Origin: Trichosphaerium sp. ATCC 40318
Taxonomy: Eukaryota; Protista; Tubulinea
Reading direction: 5' to 3'
DNA length: 64,000 nucleotides
NCBI GenBank assembly: GCA_038496445.1
Contig: JALMLS010000173.1
Location: forward strand, 80,822-144,821
The notes under the pieces are model-generated. The model was not told the origin of the DNA and did not search any database. It saw nothing but the letters and a program-made list of their open reading frames with translations. How positions within the stretch are numbered: the stretch's first letter is position 1; every line of letters starts with the position of its first letter. A program made the position numbers and the translations under genes. Of the stretch, positions 43,655 through 53,099 are shown in pieces.

Positions 43655-46600
43655 ATGACAAGTACGTTCTCACAACTGTAAATAGCTTATACAACAGCAA
43701 AGCTAAAAGTGTTTTTAGTTGTATTTTTATCTATTTTTCCTTTCTCTTCTGAGCGCTTTATCATCCTTACATTGTTTTAGATTCTCTGCTAGCGGTACTA
43801 TACCGCGGTATTTCGCTACTACTAGTACTTGTAATAGCAAAGGGTTTTTGCGGCTCGAACTCAAACCCTGACACTATATTCACCTGTGATGCAACTTCTA
43901 CTGGCTGGGGATGTGACCCTAGGATGTGGGCTATTGTGAGGGGCCGCAAGAACAGATTAATCTGTAACGAGTCCCCTCGGCCACGCATGCATTGGGCGTC
44001 TAAGGTGAAGGCAAGTTCACAGTATCAGGTATTCGCTGGTGAAGAGGACTCTCCACAAACAACATACGTACCTGGTAGTATTGTAGACATCACAGTGCTG
44101 GTAAAGAACTACTATAGAAAGTACAGAGGAATCCTAATGTACGCTAACCAAAGCAATCAACAAATCAATTCTTGATTTTTTCTTCTTTTTTCTCTTCCAG
44201 TCGCCCTCAAGCATCTTTCTTATGTTTTGTTCAGGTACGCTGTAGATTCTGATGGAAATCATGTTGGTGAATGGAAATTACCAAATGATGAACCACGTGC
44301 GCTAAATTTGTCAGATCTTTTTTTGTGGAAGTTGTTTCTTACTTTTTTCGGTTTTTTAGCTTTATTCCTTATACCTTGGGAGAAGTCACATGCTTGTGGG
44401 GGCAGCGTTATGCATGCAAACGCTATACCGAAACCATTAATGACAACATTAACATTCATTGCGCCTCCAACTGGAACAGGTAAAATCACTTTTCATGCTC
44501 TCATCAAGAGTGGTCCAGCTAACAGTGGCGATTTCTGGTGGCCAAACGGAGGTAACCCATTATCGCTCACAGAGTCTTCAAACTCTCTTTCAACCAACAG
44601 TGGATGGTTCCAAACAGAGGTACATTGAATCGACTGAAAACGACTTAAAAACAAAAAGTGTTTGGATTTAGCGTCTTATTTGTTTCTTAGCTTGGAGAAT
44701 CATGCACTGAGAGGTGCTCTAAAGAGGGACTCCCTTGCAACGCTGCATCTATTCAAGGCATAAACAGTATTTCGGAAATCAATAGACTCTTAAAGCCTTC
44801 GGGTTTTATTTGCAGAAAACCATTTTTGAGCGGTTGCAGTTCTATGGGAACAACACAAACGGTGGACGGCATGTGTTATTACGATGATATGTCATGTGAA
44901 GATGGTCGCTCAACAGATGTTGCTACATGTGAAGCTAAAAGCACAAATGAAGAAGATGGGTACGTACTTTAAAATGAATCGCCACTGTTGGTCAACTTTT
45001 ATTTGCTGTTATTACTTTCTCCTAACACATCTGTTTTAATAGATTGCGCTTCTGTAAATGTGGTAGTACAACCAATCCACGTGATGCACACAATGGAGGT
45101 TCATCAAGGAGTGCTTCGTTCATATTGTTGGCTTTATGCAGTTTGGGCCTAGCTTTCTTCAACAGTAAGAGCCACGCTACAACGTCCATGATTCTTGGCC
45201 TGCTTCTTATCTCTTTATTGCTATTACCGTCTGCAAGCGCTCACAACTGGCTCAAAAGTCCAGCGAGAGCAGGTCACGCAAGCACAGAAGGTCCTTGTCC
45301 TCCAAAAGTATCAAACGGCCCACATGCTCAAATCGGCCCTGACCAAACGGTCCAAATCGAATGGTCTTCAGGTCACTTTTCTCCTGGTTACTTTGTCATC
45401 GTACATTCTAAAGACGAAGATAAATTGAAGTACCACAACAAGAGACTGTTCCAAAAGTACTTTGACGAAGCACCTGATGGAGCTATCTCTACTGTCAAGA
45501 TATATCACAGAACATCAGATAGTGGCGTTGGTGGTTTATATGGAGATATCATTCCGCCAACCTCTAAAGACTACCTTGTCAGACCAGGAGTTTTCGCAGG
45601 AAGTACCGGATGGGGACCTAAACCTACTAAGAAGTTGGTCAACTACAGAGAAGGTATACATAAAGATAACTGGGCTGAGTATAGGAACGAAAAGTATCCA
45701 TGGATTGAAGCTATATTAAGGGCGAACCACCCAACTCACAGACCATCACAAGCTGATGTCGCAGCAATTAAAATACCTGGGCGTGCTGGATTTGGAAGAT
45801 ACATAGTACGTCACTCTCCAACAAGAACTCTACTTTTTTCTAAAATTTCTCCTTAAAAACATCACATGCACTTTTTTATCAAACTGTAGTTTTTCTTTTA
45901 ATGAAATATAGGCACATTGGGTATGGAAAGGATACCGTGATTGCACAGATATAGATTACGTAGAAAATCAAGTAACTGATATTTATGGCGTAGCTCCACC
46001 TCCTGGAGCAAGATACACGTACGTGCTCCAAAAAAACAATAGCTATTCATTAGTACATGATTATATTTTGCTAACTGTTTTGTTTGAAGGCGTATCGATC
46101 ATTGCTACTTCCCTACTCCTAAATCAACACGAGGTAAGTGTTTATGTCTCGGAGGTCCAGAGGCTTTCTCTTTTTTTTCTTCTTTTTCTTTTTTTTTGGT
46201 TTAAGTGTTCGCTTCGTTGACACTTTACTAGGTTGTACAAGAGTATTCAGCAATCTAAAATACTGTCTCAAATTCTGTGAAGGCAAAAAGATATGCCAAG
46301 GTGTATACACAGCTCCTCTAGCGGTTCCAGGCAATAGGTGGTATTCTCAAGCTAACCTCATACCTCAAAAGTGTTTAGATACTGTAAACATGACGAAACT
46401 CAACCAAGAAGAAGATCCAAGCAAGGCATTCATGTGTATGGCCGTATACGCTAGAAGTGGAAGCGATACCAGAGGACAATATGAGACAGTACTTCCAGGT
46501 GACCCTGCTTACAGTTCAAGTTGTTATGTGAAAAACAAGGGTAATATATTCCCAAGCTCTCCTGAACCGAAAACGAAGAATATTCCATGGCGACACGGAG

Positions 46601-47091
46601 ATAAATGTATAGATTGTTACACAGCGAAAAAAAACAGGGATATTACTGTAACAACATTCCCAAGATTCCTACTTCAAGATAAATGTATCAACTGCGATCT
46701 TGAGCCATCAACGGAACCTTTACCAAAGAGAATCAGACTTGTTAACGGAACATCGTACAGAGCTTGTAAAGGATTACTAAATGATTGGTCAGGTTCAGGA
46801 TCTATCACTTGTAAGGGTACAAGAGAGCAAAAGAGTGCTCTTTGCTTCAAGCAGCTCCTTGTGAACGGACGAGACTTCAAACACCAGTGGTTTAATGACG
46901 AATGTGCAGCTGCTATTGTTGCTGATCCCGAATGTGATAACAGGTATCTGAACGCATACAGAGGAAGGCAAGCTTACCGAGGAGAGAATACTGGAAGTTG
47001 TTATTGTATGAGAAAATTAGATTGCTGCGCTTGTTCTCCAATCCAAAAGGCAAAGAGCGCTTGGAAATATTGGGAGATAGAACTTGTCTAA
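43655..47091 (+). CDS. Reeler domain + Cys-rich domain + internal signal peptide + LPMO-like His-brace domain + Cys-rich C-terminus, multi-exon
   Basis: Signal peptide; Reeler (TYVPG...YRGILMYA...VGEW...HAN..PK...FIAPPTGTGKITFHA); LLLPSASA/HNWLKSPAR; WSSGH; GRYIAHWVWKGYRDCTDI. Confidence 0.75.
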
Positions 47092-47443
47092 TGATTCACA
47101 TCACCAATTACAATCAAATCAAGTAACAACTCAATCAACGAGTTAGCAATAAAAAATAGTTTCAAACACTATAGTCAGTTTTAGTTGAATGTAGTGAGGC
47201 TCCTAGTACTTTCAAAAGTGCCAATTGAAATCCATAGTACTATTTGCAATCTGCTTGATCTTATTACTGACAATGGCTAATTTACATCTAACTTAAAGCA
47301 AGTATATGAAGTCTGTTAAAAGTAGCGGATACTGCTCATATTAGTTCGCACTAATTTCGAAATTGATTAGGACTACAAGCGCAACAAAACGCGAATTTTC
47401 TTTATCGAAATTGTGAAAACCAATCACAAACTCGTTGTGGTAA

Positions 47444-47541
47444 TGTAATAAAGAGAGACGGCAATTAGGTTAGCCTGTGAATCTTCTATGTATTAAGGTA
47501 CAGGAATAGTTAAGTACAGTATGCGGTATATTGTCATTACA
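47444..47541 (-). repeat. 3' LTR of element B
   Basis: TGTAAT...ATTACA, identical to 52746-52843. Confidence 0.95.
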
Positions 47542-47552
47542 GTTCTCCCCCC
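47542..47552 (-). promoter_or_regulatory. polypurine tract of element B
   Basis: GGGGGGAGAAC on the minus strand abutting the 3' LTR. Confidence 0.88.
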
Positions 47553-47583
47553 GTTTTTAGAGCGTTGTCACTCCTGTGCAACG

Positions 47584-50500
47584 TTAGCGTCGAAGCTTAG
47601 CAATCTCGTAAGAGAACGCAATGTCAAAGTTTGAAATGAGTCTATTGACGAAGCGGAGGACTTCCTCGTTGCTATGCAATCGGCCAAGCTGATGTAAGAA
47701 AACATCGTTGCGAGAATTACTGGTAACGTAAAAAGAACCATGAGTCAACAAGCTCATGAGAACTTTTACAGCACCCTCGTAAGCTTTCTGCTTCGACGAG
47801 GTGAGTACGCTATCGCGTATACGTGTCAGATGATTCTTCAGGGTAGCCATCGTGTCTACAGTACGTCGACTGGACTGGCTACGAGGCGTATCTTTAGAGG
47901 GACGCGGAGTGTGAGGTAGACCTGGGGTAGGAGTTTGGGTCTGATGAAGTTTTGGAATTTGATTATCACGGAATTTCCAATAAGATTTGAGCCGTCTAGC
48001 ATTGACAATGGGGTGCCATGATGTCTCTCCAGAGGGTTTATCAAGCAGGAATACACCTGGAGCCGTTTGTTTAATGATCTGATACGGTCCAATCCAGTGA
48101 CTGGAGAGCTTGTCGGTGAATTTGCCATCGGGTTTGGGGACATTAACCATAACCCATTGAGCGGGTTTATAGTTATGTGTTTTAGCACCGCGAGTACGGT
48201 CATGATATGCTTTTTGGTAGGCGCGTTGTTTTTCAGCGTGCTGATTTGCAAGGCTGAGTGCTTTGGACAACCGAGTACGAACACGTTTAGGAAAAGCGTG
48301 TCCCAGAGGGGGTGAAGCGTCTGGAGCCAAAGAAGCTTGAATAGCAGTACGGCCAAGGCGTCCAGTCATCAGGAAATGTGGAGACTGTTTAGTAGAGGCG
48401 TGTGGTGCAAAGTTATACGCTTGTAAACATTGAGGTAAAAAGTCGTCCCAGTCGTCATGATCTTCATTGACGTACAGAGAGAGCATCTCAATGATAGTGC
48501 GGTTGAAGCGCTCTACTTGGCCATTGGTCTGTGGGTGATATGCAGTGGTGTTCAACTTCTTAACACCAAAAAGGGCATTAAGCTCAGAGATCAATCCAGA
48601 CAGGAAGTTCTCGCCACGGTCGGAAAGCAATTGCATAGGATAGCCCCAACGGCGGAACACATCGTTGTAGAGCCAGCGGGCAATCTTGGCGGACTTCTCA
48701 TCAGGGAGCGCAACAGCTTCAACAAATTTGGTACACAAATCGGTAACCACAATAACTTTGCAGTTACCATGGTGCGACTTGGGAAGTTTAAGGGCATCAA
48801 TGGACACTGTGTGCCAGGGTTCTATGGACACAGTAGACTTCATAGGAGCTGTAAGCTTCGAACGTGGACCCTTACGAGCGGCGCACTTCGAACAATTTAA
48901 GCACCAATCTTTGACATCACCAGAACAGTTACGCCACCAAAAACGGCGGCGAATGCTGTTGAATGTACGCATGAACATCTGGTGGCCAAGGTCATCGTGG
49001 AAGGCAGCGAGCACTGTGTTGACATGAGATCGGGGAACGCAAAGGAGTCGGAAGGGTTCATCAGAGGGAAGTGCTTTAGAAGGAAACCAATATCTATATA
49101 ATAACAAAGAATTGTCATCAATAAAATATGATTCGGATTGTTCGAGAACACGGCGAGAAGCAGAGCGCCCAGTAGGTTTGACACCAGTGAAAATATATGT
49201 ATACAGATCAGAGAAGGCAGGATCAGCCTTTTGAGCTTCAGGTGTGATACGGAGGTTATCAACAGCAACAGCAGAACTAACATTAGCTATAGGGTTACGG
49301 CTTGGACCATCAGCGTTGCCGTGCCAGCGACCAGGGCGGTGTACTACAGTATAATCATAGTCTTCTAACTGTAGTGCCCATCGAGCATATTTAGGCTTGA
49401 GAGTTTTGGATTGTAAGATATACTTGATAGCACTGTGATCAATATAAATGGTAACTTTGCTATAAAGAATATATGGACGAAACTTAGCGAGAGCGCGGAC
49501 TAACGCAAGACACTCCCACTCAGTGGTGTTTTTGTAACGTCGCTCGGCTTCAGAGTGTGCTTTGGAGAAGTACGAGATGACACGTGAAACACCGTTGTTG
49601 TCAAGCTGTTCGAGGACTGCGCCAGAGGCGTAGCCAGATCCATCAGTATATAGCCGAAAAGGTCGATCAAAACGTGGAAGAGCTAACAGCGGAGGTGAAG
49701 TCAACGCAGTTTTGAGAGCTTTAAACGAACGAGTTTGAGGAGCCGCCCAAACCCAGGGTTGTTCATTGCGAATAAGCTTTTGCAGTGGTTCGGCTATGTG
49801 AGCGTACTGTTTGATATACTTCCGATAGTAGTTCGACATCCCCAAAAAGGTGCGTACTTCGGAGGCGTTGCGAGGAGATCGTGCTTCTAGAATACACTTC
49901 GTGTGCTCTGGATTGGGTCGTACACCCTCGGACGAGATGACATGTCCCAAATAGGCGATCTGAGGTTTAAAGAACTGGCATTTGTCAGCACGGAGTGTGA
50001 AACCAGAATCGATAACGCGTTCAAAAACGAGGAGCAAAGCAATAAGATGATCCTCGAAATTGGCAGAATAGACGATAATGTCGTCCATATATACCAAACA
50101 AACGTGCCACGCTAGACCTGACATCAGAACGTTCATGGTGCGCTGAAAGGTGGCAGGAGCATTGGTTAGACCAAAAGGCATGCGGTTCCACTCGTATAAT
50201 CCGTCGCGAGTAGAAAATGCAGTCTTGTGTTTGTCTTTTTCATCAACAGGTATATGCCAAAAACCTGATGGAGCATCGAGAGTTGAAAAGAATTTAGCGG
50301 ATTGTAGGTGGTTGAGAGCGTCATTGATGCGTGGTAATGGGTAAACGTCCTTCTTGGTGACTTTGTTGAGAGCACGATAGTCAACACAAAAGCGTTTGGA
50401 TCCATCAGACTTGCGGACAAGCAACACAGGGGAAGACCAAGCACTGTTAGAGGGACGAATAATGCCATTTTTGAGCAATTCGTCAACTTGAAGTGCAATA

Positions 50501-51555
50501 TGTTCAGCTTCTGGAGGTGAAAACGAGCGAAGCGGAACACGGACAGGTCTGCTATCACCGGTGTCAATCTGATGAGGAGGTACGTGCGCTTGTGGGGGTG
50601 CTTTGGGATCGGAGGTGAACGTGTGTCGAAGTTGCCACAGAAAAAGCAGAAGTTGATCATACTGCAATTTGGTGAGGTGGTCACCGCGTTCAACTTTGAA
50701 TAACTTCAGTGTCTGTCGTCGGACCTCTGGCGTGAGAAGCTGCATTTGGAGAAGTTGATGCAGTTTTTTCTTGATACGTTTAAGTTCTGTGTTGGCATTA
50801 CGGATGCTACGAATACTGTTTACTTCCAACAGTGCAAGAGCAGTCCCAGCGCGTATTTTAACTCGATTGGCTGTAAAGTTGGAAACGCCAATAGAAATAT
50901 GTGGACTATCCAGAGTGGTGATGCCACGTGCGACGTTGAAGCGAGAGTTATGAGAACGAAGAGGACGTACCAAGCCGTGTTTGACATTGGGCTTCCAGTT
51001 TGTCACATGACCCTTAACAACCTGAGCGCCGGTCAACCCACTAAAAGCAGGCAAGGTCACGGTATTCGAACACCGTACATAATGCACGTGTTCGGGCGCG
51101 TAAGAGAATATGCCCATTGACTCAGAGAGTTCAAAGGCGGTCTCTTTGAGGGTCATCTTGGCGTCGGAAATGTCGAGGACTGCATTGAAGGAAGCGAGAG
51201 CGTCCATACCGAGAATGACATCGTAACGAGATGTGAGGACGACCAGGAATCGAACATCACGAACACGACTGCCAATACGGACAGGGAGGAGATGTGAGCC
51301 GAGAACTTTAACAAGGGAACCATCAAAAGTACGAACGGAACGCGTATAAAGAACAGGTACTTTATTGTTTGTAACACGTTTTAATGTTTGCAAAGAGATC
51401 AGAGAGGCATCGGCACCAGTGTCGAGTAAGCAGGGCAAAGGGGCATCGGAGACATGGCAAGTACCCATGAGAGCTTGTACTTGCTTCTGGCGAGGTGTAG
51501 CTGATTTGTTTGCAGAGGCGCTTGCTACGAAATGAGCGCCTTTTACCAGTTTTCC
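47584..51555 (-). CDS. pol: Pol (protease, RT, RNase H, integrase), reached by -1 frameshift
   Basis: LLDTGA, YMDD, YTDGS, HHCC (H..LGH...CSKC), D-D-E (SIDA/SDRG/QVER) and WIGPY; the frame is open from the gag-end slippery site to the ATG at 51468. Confidence 0.95.
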   Translation of the reverse strand, partial: GKLVKGAHFVASASANKSATPRQKQVQALMGTCHVSDAPLPCLLDTGADASLISLQTLKRVTNNKVPVLYTRSVRTFDGSLVKVLGSHLLPVRIGSRVRDVRFLVVLTSRYDVILGMDALASFNAVLDISDAKMTLKETAFELSESMGIFSYAPEHVHYVRCSNTVTLPAFSGLTGAQVVKGHVTNWKPNVKHGLVRPLRSHNSRFNVARGITTLDSPHISIGVSNFTANRVKIRAGTALALLEVNSIRSIRNANTELKRIKKKLHQLLQMQLLTPEVRRQTLKLFKVERGDHLTKLQYDQLLLFLWQLRHTFTSDPKAPPQAHVPPHQIDTGDSRPVRVPLRSFSPPEAEHIALQVDELLKNGIIRPSNSAWSSPVLLVRKSDGSKRFCVDYRALNKVTKKDVYPLPRINDALNHLQSAKFFSTLDAPSGFWHIPVDEKDKHKTAFSTRDGLYEWNRMPFGLTNAPATFQRTMNVLMSGLAWHVCLVYMDDIIVYSANFEDHLIALLLVFERVIDSGFTLRADKCQFFKPQIAYLGHVISSEGVRPNPEHTKCILEARSPRNASEVRTFLGMSNYYRKYIKQYAHIAEPLQKLIRNEQPWVWAAPQTRSFKALKTALTSPPLLALPRFDRPFRLYTDGSGYASGAVLEQLDNNGVSRVISYFSKAHSEAERRYKNTTEWECLALVRALAKFRPYILYSKVTIYIDHSAIKYILQSKTLKPKYARWALQLEDYDYTVVHRPGRWHGNADGPSRNPIANVSSAVAVDNLRITPEAQKADPAFSDLYTYIFTGVKPTGRSASRRVLEQSESYFIDDNSLLLYRYWFPSKALPSDEPFRLLCVPRSHVNTVLAAFHDDLGHQMFMRTFNSIRRRFWWRNCSGDVKDWCLNCSKCAARKGPRSKLTAPMKSTVSIEPWHTVSIDALKLPKSHHGNCKVIVVTDLCTKFVEAVALPDEKSAKIARWLYNDVFRRWGYPMQLLSDRGENFLSGLISELNALFGVKKLNTTAYHPQTNGQVERFNRTIIEMLSLYVNEDHDDWDDFLPQCLQAYNFAPHASTKQSPHFLMTGRLGRTAIQASLAPDASPPLGHAFPKRVRTRLSKALSLANQHAEKQRAYQKAYHDRTRGAKTHNYKPAQWVMVNVPKPDGKFTDKLSSHWIGPYQIIKQTAPGVFLLDKPSGETSWHPIVNARRLKSYWKFRDNQIPKLHQTQTPTPGLPHTPRPSKDTPRSQSSRRTVDTMATLKNHLTRIRDSVLTSSKQKAYEGAVKVLMSLLTHGSFYVTSNSRNDVFLHQLGRLHSNEEVLRFVNRLISNFDIAFSYEIAKLRR
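51497..51555 (-). promoter_or_regulatory. -1 ribosomal frameshift signal (G GAA AAC + stem-loop/pseudoknot)
   Basis: G GAA AAC at 51555-51549 just before the gag stop; stem AGGCGCT/AGCGCCT; loop GTAGC complementary to downstream GCTAC. Confidence 0.75.
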
Positions 51556-52694
51556 GAGTCATAGTACTCATCGTTGTAATAATCATCCAAGGCATCGGCT
51601 TCATGAGAAGACACGTGATTGACATCAAGCATTGGGTCATCTAGATCGTCGAGTGGAGGAGACTGCGGTTCAGGCAAAAGAGAGAGTGGATCAGTATCGA
51701 CATTGTTGACCTGTCGATTGCGTTGAGGATAGCGAGGGCGTCGGGACTGAGGTCGACCATTATACTGGCGAGGTCTTGAGCGGTTGTTGTAGGTGGGACG
51801 GGTGCGTAGACAGGACTCGAGGCGTCGGAGGCGTTGAAGACGGTAACACTGTTGAATAGTGTGATTGTCCTTGTTGCAATAATCACAGTGTCGGCGAGGT
51901 CTGGCGGGCGTTGGAGGAGCACGAACGGCGCTAATGGTAGGAACAGGAGCCATGATAGTAGAAGGGCTGAAATCGAGTTGATGGGCTAGAGTATCAGCAA
52001 TACCAACAGCTTCGTCGAATGTAGGAGGTGCGGCAGTACAAACGAGACCACGTAGAGCAGGGTGAAGGCCATGGAGGAATATATCCATCATGACAGGAGT
52101 GTCGAGGTTGTTAGCCTCGTTAGCATCGAAAGCAAGATCACGAAACTCATCGACGTACTCGTGGATAGGACGATTACCTTGAGAAATCACCAATAACTTC
52201 TTACGGCACTCGACAGCATAACCAGTGCGTAGGTAACGACGCATGACGGAAACGAGAATAGGGTACATAGCTGAGGTAAATCGTATTGTATTACCAGGGC
52301 CAAGAACGACTTTGTACTTCAAGGAGGGGCCTTGGGGAATCGATTTGACAGCACCGTGAGCATCGCCAAGTAATCTCGTGCGGAGCATGAAATTATAATC
52401 TGGCTCCAGCCAATTGTATTGGTGTGCGCATTGCTTCATGTAACTAAGCCAATCGCGTATGTTGGACAGGGGGTCTTTGGTGGGAACGCCATGAAATTCT
52501 ACAACTTTAGGGAAGTTCTTTTTATCCCTAACAGCCAGTAGGTCTTCAGGCGCGATCTTAGCGTCTTTATAGAAACGCTCTATCTCGCGGGAGGCAAGCG
52601 CGAGAGCATCCGAATTTATCTTATCAAAATCGGGTAAATAGTCCCAGGGAGCGTGTTCTAACTCGAACTGGGAAGAAATAATAGTAATAGACAT
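51543..52694 (-). CDS. gag: Gag with retrotransposon capsid region and CCHC zinc knuckle
   Basis: QGNRPIHEYVDEF...FLHGL and CDYCNKDNHTIQQC; first ATG after the LTR at 52694. Confidence 0.92.
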   Translation of the reverse strand: MSITIISSQFELEHAPWDYLPDFDKINSDALALASREIERFYKDAKIAPEDLLAVRDKKNFPKVVEFHGVPTKDPLSNIRDWLSYMKQCAHQYNWLEPDYNFMLRTRLLGDAHGAVKSIPQGPSLKYKVVLGPGNTIRFTSAMYPILVSVMRRYLRTGYAVECRKKLLVISQGNRPIHEYVDEFRDLAFDANEANNLDTPVMMDIFLHGLHPALRGLVCTAAPPTFDEAVGIADTLAHQLDFSPSTIMAPVPTISAVRAPPTPARPRRHCDYCNKDNHTIQQCYRLQRLRRLESCLRTRPTYNNRSRPRQYNGRPQSRRPRYPQRNRQVNNVDTDPLSLLPEPQSPPLDDLDDPMLDVNHVSSHEADALDDYYNDEYYDSENW

Positions 52695-52730
52695 CCGAGA
52701 GGTATAATAGGTAAAGCGAGGCACAAGAAA

Positions 52731-52743
52731 GCAAGTGTCGCCA
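52731..52743 (-). promoter_or_regulatory. primer-binding site, probably tRNA-Ser
   Basis: TGGCGACACTTGC 2 nt inside the 5' LTR, complementary to a ...GCAAGUGUCG-CCA tRNA end typical of tRNA-Ser. The tRNA identity is inferred. Confidence 0.7.
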
Positions 52744-52745
52744 AA

Positions 52746-52843
52746 TGTAATAAAGAGAGACGGCAATTAGGTTAGCCTGTGAATCTTCTATGTATTAAGG
52801 TACAGGAATAGTTAAGTACAGTATGCGGTATATTGTCATTACA
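52746..52843 (-). repeat. 5' LTR of element B
   Basis: Identical to 47444-47541. Confidence 0.95.
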
Positions 52844-53099
52844 GTAAAGTAACAATCTTAGCAAAACGCAAAAGTTTCAACCGGTGGGTAAAACTGATCA
52901 TTTTGAGGTACTAATTTTTTTCGTCATGAATATTAGTGAATACGTATTCATTCATAACACTAAAGCATTAGAAGATGCCTCGAGTACAAACCCTGAATGC
53001 TGTTGAAATACTTAATGTTCAGTATCTCGAGCTCTTTCATACCTAGGCCAGCAAGTTAATAAAACTAAAGGCTTCGAAACGAACAGTTTAACTTTCACG

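Follow-up and report, generated by a model that had tools for sequence, protein, structure and literature searches.

We describe a gene on the forward strand at positions 43655-47091 of a 64,000-nucleotide (nt) stretch of the genome of Trichosphaerium sp. ATCC 40318 (assembly GCA_038496445.1, contig JALMLS010000173.1, positions 80,822 to 144,821), which is referred to here as the window; all features of the gene given below are on this strand. The gene encodes a protein with a Reeler domain in its N-terminal half, followed in the same reading frame by a domain (the His domain) that starts with an invariant histidine lying directly behind an internal hydrophobic segment. The best explanation of this arrangement, to which we assign a probability of about 0.62, is that the product is one secretory precursor that would be cleaved internally into a copper-brace oxidative enzyme and a membrane-held Reeler partner.

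The window protein has exactly three hydrophobic segments, at residues 5-27, 343-359 and 365-385. The first marks the N-terminal signal peptide (residues 1-24; 43655-43845), which aligns with the N-terminal signal peptides of the homologues, and the other two form a hairpin between the halves of the protein. The first segment of the hairpin, TM1 (FILLALCSLGLAFF; residues 343-359; 45119-45160), is a candidate stop-transfer segment. It is followed by a nine-residue loop, NSKSHATTS (45161-45187), predicted to be cytosolic, and then by the internal signal peptide MILGLLLISLLLLPSASA (residues 365-385; 45188-45241), with a predicted signal-peptidase site after Ala385. This second segment ends in SASA, directly before the CAC codon of His1 (45242-45244), where the motif HNWLKSPAR begins. 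A single exon of 763 nt (45043-45805) holds TM1, the loop, the second signal peptide and His1, so the junction of the two halves is not a guessed splice; neither a splice junction nor an intergenic gap lies between the Reeler half and the His half.

Relatives were collected by an exhaustive HMMER search of cluster representatives (50% clustering), with the His-domain exon (45242-45805 of the window) as the query. The search returned 286 representatives at E≤1e-3, 106 of them at E≤1e-10, and the best is P0001, a protein of 976 amino acids (aa) with 46% identity. Histidine occupies position 1 in 136/136 relatives whose match starts at query residue 1, and the start motif is HNW, with HNY, HNF or HQW as rare variants. 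This histidine is internal in 84 of 137 relatives, at positions 73-921; in 53 of the 137 it comes after an ordinary N-terminal signal peptide, between residues 6 and 57. The residue at -1 is A, G or S in 134/137 homologues and that at -3 is A, V, T, C, S or G in 136/137. Because the histidine at +1 and the -3/-1 pattern are both conserved, the layout of hairpin and His1 is not a product of chance. Two hydrophobic segments are present within the 60 residues preceding the histidine in 61/84 fused homologues, and in 44 of these 61 the loop between them has a net charge of at least +1, in agreement with the positive-inside rule. In h+c length the internal segment (median 16.5) matches the N-terminal signal peptides that stand-alone members carry (median 15.5), and the pattern of the segment is identical to that in members with a plain N-terminal signal peptide. 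All elements of an internal-signal polyprotein layout are thus present, namely a stop-transfer segment, a basic loop, a segment of signal-peptide length and small residues at -3 and -1. The histidine is also the predicted first mature residue after a signal-peptidase site, as in lytic polysaccharide monooxygenases (LPMOs), with the signal peptide here being internal. The earlier note on this stretch, made from its letters alone, had placed the end of a second signal peptide exactly before the histidine; the sequence features it relied on are present and hold across the family. On this basis, internal cleavage exposing His1 is predicted with good, though not full, confidence.

The same fusion is found on transcripts. 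P0001 is encoded by an intronless JGI contig of 2994 nt (L001; open reading frame, ORF, 46-2976), and P0160, a member of the P0010 cluster, by an intronless MMETSP0437 contig of 3282 nt (L002; 1019 aa). On both contigs in-frame stops precede the first ATG, and the contigs barely exceed their ORFs. Fused ORFs also occur on Trinity transcripts of Flabellula baltica and Rhizamoeba saxonica (Amoebozoa, Leptomyxida), Cavostelium apophysatum (Amoebozoa) and Lapot gusevi (Rhizaria), and of an MMETSP sample of Euplotes focardii, where contamination is possible. The earlier note had proposed that the Reeler and His halves are read in frame from one ORF and had suggested looking for the same fusion elsewhere. 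This collinear fusion does recur on intronless transcript contigs of distant protists, and about 84 relatives with an internal histidine were found; that we are dealing with one gene and one precursor is very likely. Stand-alone forms are real as well, since in L003 and L004 the ATG-signal peptide-HNW start is preceded by stops, at a distance of two and six codons, and the His domain therefore functions with histidine as residue 1. Among the 150 listed representatives, 62 have the N-terminal domain collinearly in common with the window protein, 45 the Cys-rich module and 28 the C-terminal region.

In a tree of 110 His domains the window copy groups with fused amoebozoan members, and fused and stand-alone members interleave. 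A single origin of the fusion was rejected, because well-supported branches of the tree force 11 or more changes between the fused and the stand-alone form, with the caveat that some "stand-alone" rows may be truncated gene calls. A conserved start methionine for the second half was rejected too, as methionines are scattered upstream of the histidine and their enrichment over the TM1 window is marginal (p=0.04). In 35/82 fused homologues there is no methionine 12-35 residues upstream of the histidine, so that these proteins can reach His1 only via processing. The window copy does have a methionine that opens its internal signal peptide (ATG 45188), which is not a family feature.

The region of the gene is eukaryotic and amoeba-type, with a G+C content of 38% and short GT-AG introns. 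The whole coding region was defined by a splice model and by collinearity with five fused full-length homologues. It consists of nine exons (43655-43661, 43781-44138, 44235-44296, 44360-44619, 44691-44959, 45043-45805, 45912-46018, 46090-46133 and 46232-47091), with a total of 2730 nt or 909 codons plus the stop codon TAA (47089-47091), and has no internal stops. All eight introns (43662-46231) are GT..AG and 63-119 nt long. The first exon has just 7 nt, and intron 43662-43780 interrupts the N-terminal signal peptide. In the full-length alignment the protein is collinear with the five homologues from the first signal peptide to the C-terminal Cys-rich region, and its exon junctions, including that of intron 44297-44359, show no indels, which validates the splice model. 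The motifs and positions quoted in the earlier note were all located in the sequence, including KIPGRAGFGRYI and AHWVWKGYRDCTDI, which are joined across intron 45806-45911. The donor sites are unusually uniform, six of the eight introns starting with GTAC and four of these with GTACGT. Intron 44297-44359 has 63 nt, in frame and stop-free; its retention would add 21 mostly hydrophobic residues to the Reeler domain, an insert that is absent from the homologues.

From these features the following route can be proposed. The first signal peptide would bring the Reeler and Cys-rich half into the lumen of the endoplasmic reticulum and would then be removed. TM1 would halt translocation, leaving the short, mostly basic loop in the cytosol. 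The second hydrophobic segment would restart translocation and, as it is built like an ordinary signal peptide, signal peptidase would be expected to cut after SASA. The products would be a membrane-held Reeler protein and a soluble protein with the invariant histidine as residue 1. The free His1 and the invariant His45 would then make up a histidine brace for copper, carried by an LPMO-like beta-sandwich. Cys-rich, probably glycan-binding, modules would also be part of the released protein, which we consider most likely to be a copper-dependent oxidative enzyme. The Reeler half, made in a 1:1 ratio, would be its surface partner and possibly its electron donor.

The His domain (residues 386-620; 45242-46123; 286 relatives) is interrupted by introns 45806-45911 and 46019-46089. 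In the mature numbering of the window protein, H1, R9 (45266-45268), H45 (45374-45376) and Y73 (45458-45460) are invariant, and N2, W3, P18, Q35, D142, Y147 and P153 are near-invariant. The strand W.GY.DC.D (45918-45953) is 84-89% conserved. No Pfam family was matched by more than one of the 110 His domains, and the lone AA9 match has E=0.084. Likewise, the lone match of a profile search against PDB, HopA1 (E=0.53), was dismissed as chance. Because an intron splits the window domain, the closest homologue (P0001:377-621) was modelled in its place, using AlphaFold2 and an alignment of 110 sequences, and the model has a predicted local distance difference test (pLDDT) score of 91 and a predicted template modelling score (pTM) of 0.86. 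An exhaustive VIA fold search over 48,161 chains, a tool that rates Z under 8 as common, placed LaX325 at the top (Z 8.1, root-mean-square deviation 3.1, 124 residues). AA15 came second (Z 7.2), and AA9, AA10, AA11, AA13, AA16 and fusolin followed (Z 5.1-6.1). LPMOs or LPMO-like proteins make up 16 of the top 50 (Z 5.1-8.1), nearly all with residue 1 aligned to mature residue 1. A feature search of the ESM Atlas gave only noise below 0.9; an Atlas neighbour cluster (Cercozoa) has LPMO_10 in 17% of its members, with a template modelling (TM) score of 0.49. The idea of an unclassified LPMO-like family, raised in the earlier note, stands in part: the domain belongs to no classified family and X325 and AA15 are nearest, while the likeness in fold is middling and without a Foldseek match at E≤1e-3. 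A copper histidine brace is somewhat more likely than not, and an LPMO-type oxidative activity of the domain is conceivable at a little under even odds.

Several observations weigh against the cleaved, copper-dependent enzyme. The tyrosine proposed as the axial ligand, that of the W.GY.DC.D strand, is conserved in about 84% of cases, versus 100% for Tyr73. Among the 110 His domains, none is a member of the LPMO family models, including PF03443 (AA9) and PF03067 (LPMO_10), and none has a Pfam match to X325/DUF6595; the profile search of PDB sequences retrieved no LPMO and no relative of solved structure. The modelled domain is that of a homologue with 46% identity to the window copy, and Foldseek with this model against PDB found nothing at E≤1e-3, AA9 LPMOs appearing at E 4e-3 to 4e-2. 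Unrelated sandwiches (p53-core, pilin and adhesin) score Z 5.7-6.5, almost as high, so that the fold evidence alone is suggestive, not decisive. No polysaccharide activity is known for X325, the structure nearest to the model (PMC7924993). Finally, a second start would be possible in this copy, since a methionine opens its internal signal peptide, and it is from the homologues that a single transcript is predicted for the window gene.

The core of the Reeler domain (residues 95-191; 44056-44505; introns 44139-44234 and 44297-44359) was delimited by matches to PF02014 and F-spondin. Pfam searches with the separate exon pieces of the window found no family at E≤1, because the introns split the domains. 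The N-terminal half of the window protein matches P0001 with E=1e-52, P0001:14-218 scores 33.6 bits against PF02014 (cut-off 21), and 31/48 aligned N-terminal domains match Reeler. The Reeler family profile also matches the F-spondin Reeler structures 2zou, 2zot and 3coo, with E about 5e-6. The N-terminal domain is, as the earlier note had it, a true Reeler. Two of its residues are invariant in the family: Met72 (43987-43989), in an MxW motif just upstream of the core, and His161 (44413-44415), within the core in the motif C...V.H..A..K, where the F-spondin Reeler has Glu. Both could be metal or haem ligands. Between the Reeler domain and the hairpin lies a Cys-rich module (residues 230-335; 44691-45091; intron 44960-45042) with a weak, sub-threshold likeness to the last ~85 positions, the C-terminal end, of Glyco_transf_18 (GnT-V). 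Such matches were obtained for the window (44691-44957), P0005 (213-298) and P0102 (197-291), the best with E=1.3e-5 and 24.4 bits against a cut-off of 28.

In most fused homologues the upstream half is a Reeler. A cupredoxin of the plastocyanin/azurin type (PF00127; 32.6 bits, cut-off 21.2) occurs in the upstream half of P0077 (366-441) and P0014 (13-39), and DOMON matches below the cut-off in the upstream halves of P0045 (512-558) and P0102 (339-436). The His domain is followed in the window protein by a Cys-rich region with 21 Cys (46124-47088; intron 46134-46231), which is common to 28 representatives. The model of this region is weak (pLDDT 67), and its best fold matches are all PAN/apple/WSC modules (Z 4.4-6.2; residues 1-110 and 163-285), so two PAN/apple/WSC-like modules are tentatively assigned. 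The window copy ends ~60-70 residues before the closest fused homologues, which have a terminal Cys-rich module of ~60 residues, PDPxC...GPPC; a tblastn search found no remnant of this module anywhere in the window. A C-terminal hydrophobic tail is absent from the window protein and present in 7/137 members only, and the His half carries no C-terminal glycosylphosphatidylinositol (GPI) anchor signal of the X325 type. In some homologues the His domain is extended by a ConA-like lectin (Laminin_G_3), by Mucin2_WxxW or by a WW domain at the end of the chain. The WW domain is at the C-terminus of some long members (P0031, P0049), implying a cytosolic tail on their His half.

Some of this evidence can also be read differently. 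Cleavage may take place as proposed and the His1 protein be a copper-capture or copper-transfer protein of the X325/Bim1/CopC kind, with the Reeler half aiding metal uptake or reduction; this is a serious rival, though the odds are against it. It would explain why LaX325 is the best structural match, at Z 8.1, and X325 members are without polysaccharide activity, Bim1 working in copper uptake with Ctr1 (PMC7924993, PMC10952591). The above-cut-off cupredoxin and the sub-threshold DOMON in some upstream halves point in the same direction. So does the arrangement of Reeler, DOMON and cytochrome b561 in animal ferric-chelate reductase 1. The modules attached to the His domain (PAN/WSC-like, ConA-like lectin and WxxW) speak against a copper carrier; moreover, no DUF6595 match was found among the 110 His domains, and the His half has no C-terminal GPI signal, unlike X325. 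An oxidative enzyme with a tethered partner is favoured because redox-type partners (Reeler, cupredoxin and perhaps DOMON) and appended binding modules recur in the family.

The fate of the hairpin is a separate matter. TM1 and the small residues before it look like a GPI-attachment signal: the share of G/A/S/N/D/C at -8 to -3 before TM1 is 0.62-0.73 in the homologues, against a background of 0.39, and TM1 is short (median 16 residues) and often contains Pro or Gly. The window copy has a hydrophobic core of 14 residues preceded by NGGSSRSAS (45080-45160). The resemblance points to an origin of the fusion from a GPI-anchored Reeler gene and a following His-domain gene that carried its own signal peptide. 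If the signal of the once-separate gene were still in use, transamidase would remove the hairpin and leave a GPI-anchored Reeler protein, a discarded peptide and a secreted His1 protein. This is unlikely, as GPI signals are C-terminal, whereas TM1 still has a loop and another hydrophobic segment behind it. Alternatively, the protein could remain uncut, its two extracellular halves linked by the membrane hairpin and its histidine serving in some other role at an internal position; cleavage is itself predicted from sequence, and short hairpins do occur in membrane proteins. Such an uncut chain would leave unexplained the -3/-1 pattern and the histidine at +1, conserved in 134-136 of 137, the identical pattern in members whose segment is a plain N-terminal signal peptide, and the signal-peptide-like h+c length, and we find it quite improbable. 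Still less probable, and by some way the faintest possibility, is that there are two genes or transcripts, the Reeler mRNA ending by another splice and the His protein starting at ATG 45188, with the read-through ORF as an artefact of the model. A GTAAGA does occur at 45165, where the first reading had placed an alternative donor, and the methionine opening the internal signal peptide would provide the start. Nevertheless, no stop interrupts the frame, the junction falls within a single exon and is read through on transcript contigs of several species, and the methionine is not conserved, being absent from 35/82 fused homologues.

A retroelement of the long terminal repeat (LTR) type (47442-52845) begins 350 nt beyond the stop codon of the gene and, starting there, did not cut the ORF. 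It has a pol-like ORF of 1294 aa on the minus strand (47584-51468) and is flanked by two identical direct repeats of 102 nt (47442-47543 and 52744-52845), whose identity suggests a recent insertion.

If the cleaved precursor is the right explanation, the unmasking of the brace histidine happens mid-chain, in a large family without Pfam or structural assignment, and searches restricted to N-termini miss the class with an internal histidine. One chain would encode both an LPMO-like protein and a candidate redox partner for it. The fusion also offers a testable function for Reeler domains, and its precursor a cellular model of how signal peptidase processes polyproteins. In amoebae and other phagotrophs, proteins of this kind may act on the walls of prey or serve to handle copper. 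A broader proposal, made tentatively and with the odds clearly against it, is that this widespread protist family uses the internal signal peptide as a built-in maturation device, a single round of translation yielding a copper histidine-brace oxidase of a new family and a membrane-tethered Reeler electron-transfer partner 1:1. In this proposal the Reeler partner would use its invariant Met and His ligands, with a cupredoxin or DOMON replacing or joining it in some lineages. It would be the first cellular case of signal peptidase making a catalytic N-terminus mid-chain and the first biochemical role for a Reeler domain.

In the literature we found no paper linking lytic polysaccharide monooxygenase and Reeler, no description of the His-domain family or of an internal-signal-peptide route to a histidine brace, nothing on LPMO polyproteins with signal peptidase, and nothing relevant on LPMO in Amoebozoa or protists. 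According to the review by Walton et al. (2023), every known histidine-brace protein obtains its N-terminal His via an N-terminal signal peptide, and the brace cannot bind copper before that peptide is removed (PMC10952591). With the LPMO families AA9-AA17 (the nearest being AA15, PDB 5msz, and AA10), the His domain shares a beta-sandwich that, in the model, aligns from His1, two invariant histidines and appended binding modules. It differs from them in that neither PF03443, PF03067 nor any LPMO sequence of solved structure matches it, and in a His1 that sits behind an internal signal peptide. The N-termini of AA10 and AA15 carry a similar motif of the H-x5-P-x-R type. X325/Bim1 (LaX325, PDB 6ibh) is the best fold match, aligned residue 1 to residue 1, and is an LPMO-like protein without an assigned polysaccharide substrate that has an N-terminal His after its signal peptide. 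In contrast to X325/Bim1, to which it has no sequence or Pfam relation, the window domain has ~235 residues instead of 150, lacks a C-terminal anchor signal on its half of the protein, and would have its His1 exposed from mid-precursor.

Reeler domains are found in F-spondin, in reelin and in the Reeler-DOMON-cytochrome b561 protein ferric-chelate reductase 1. The N-terminal half of the window protein resembles these in its Pfam Reeler domain and its match to the F-spondin structure, and two homologues have sub-threshold DOMON matches; it departs from them in that the family has an invariant Met and His of its own, F-spondin having Glu at the site of the latter. We know of no Reeler protein fused to a domain of the His-brace type. 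The novelty would lie in combining a putative histidine-brace protein with a mode of processing known mainly from viral polyproteins. In the structural region of flaviviruses and pestiviruses, and in the glycoprotein precursor of bunyaviruses, host signal peptidase cuts at internal signal sequences. There too, an internal signal with a -3/-1 site comes after a stop-transfer segment, and two lumenal proteins are obtained from one chain. The window gene differs in belonging to a cellular family, and in that the predicted cut would also create a catalytic or metal-binding N-terminus.

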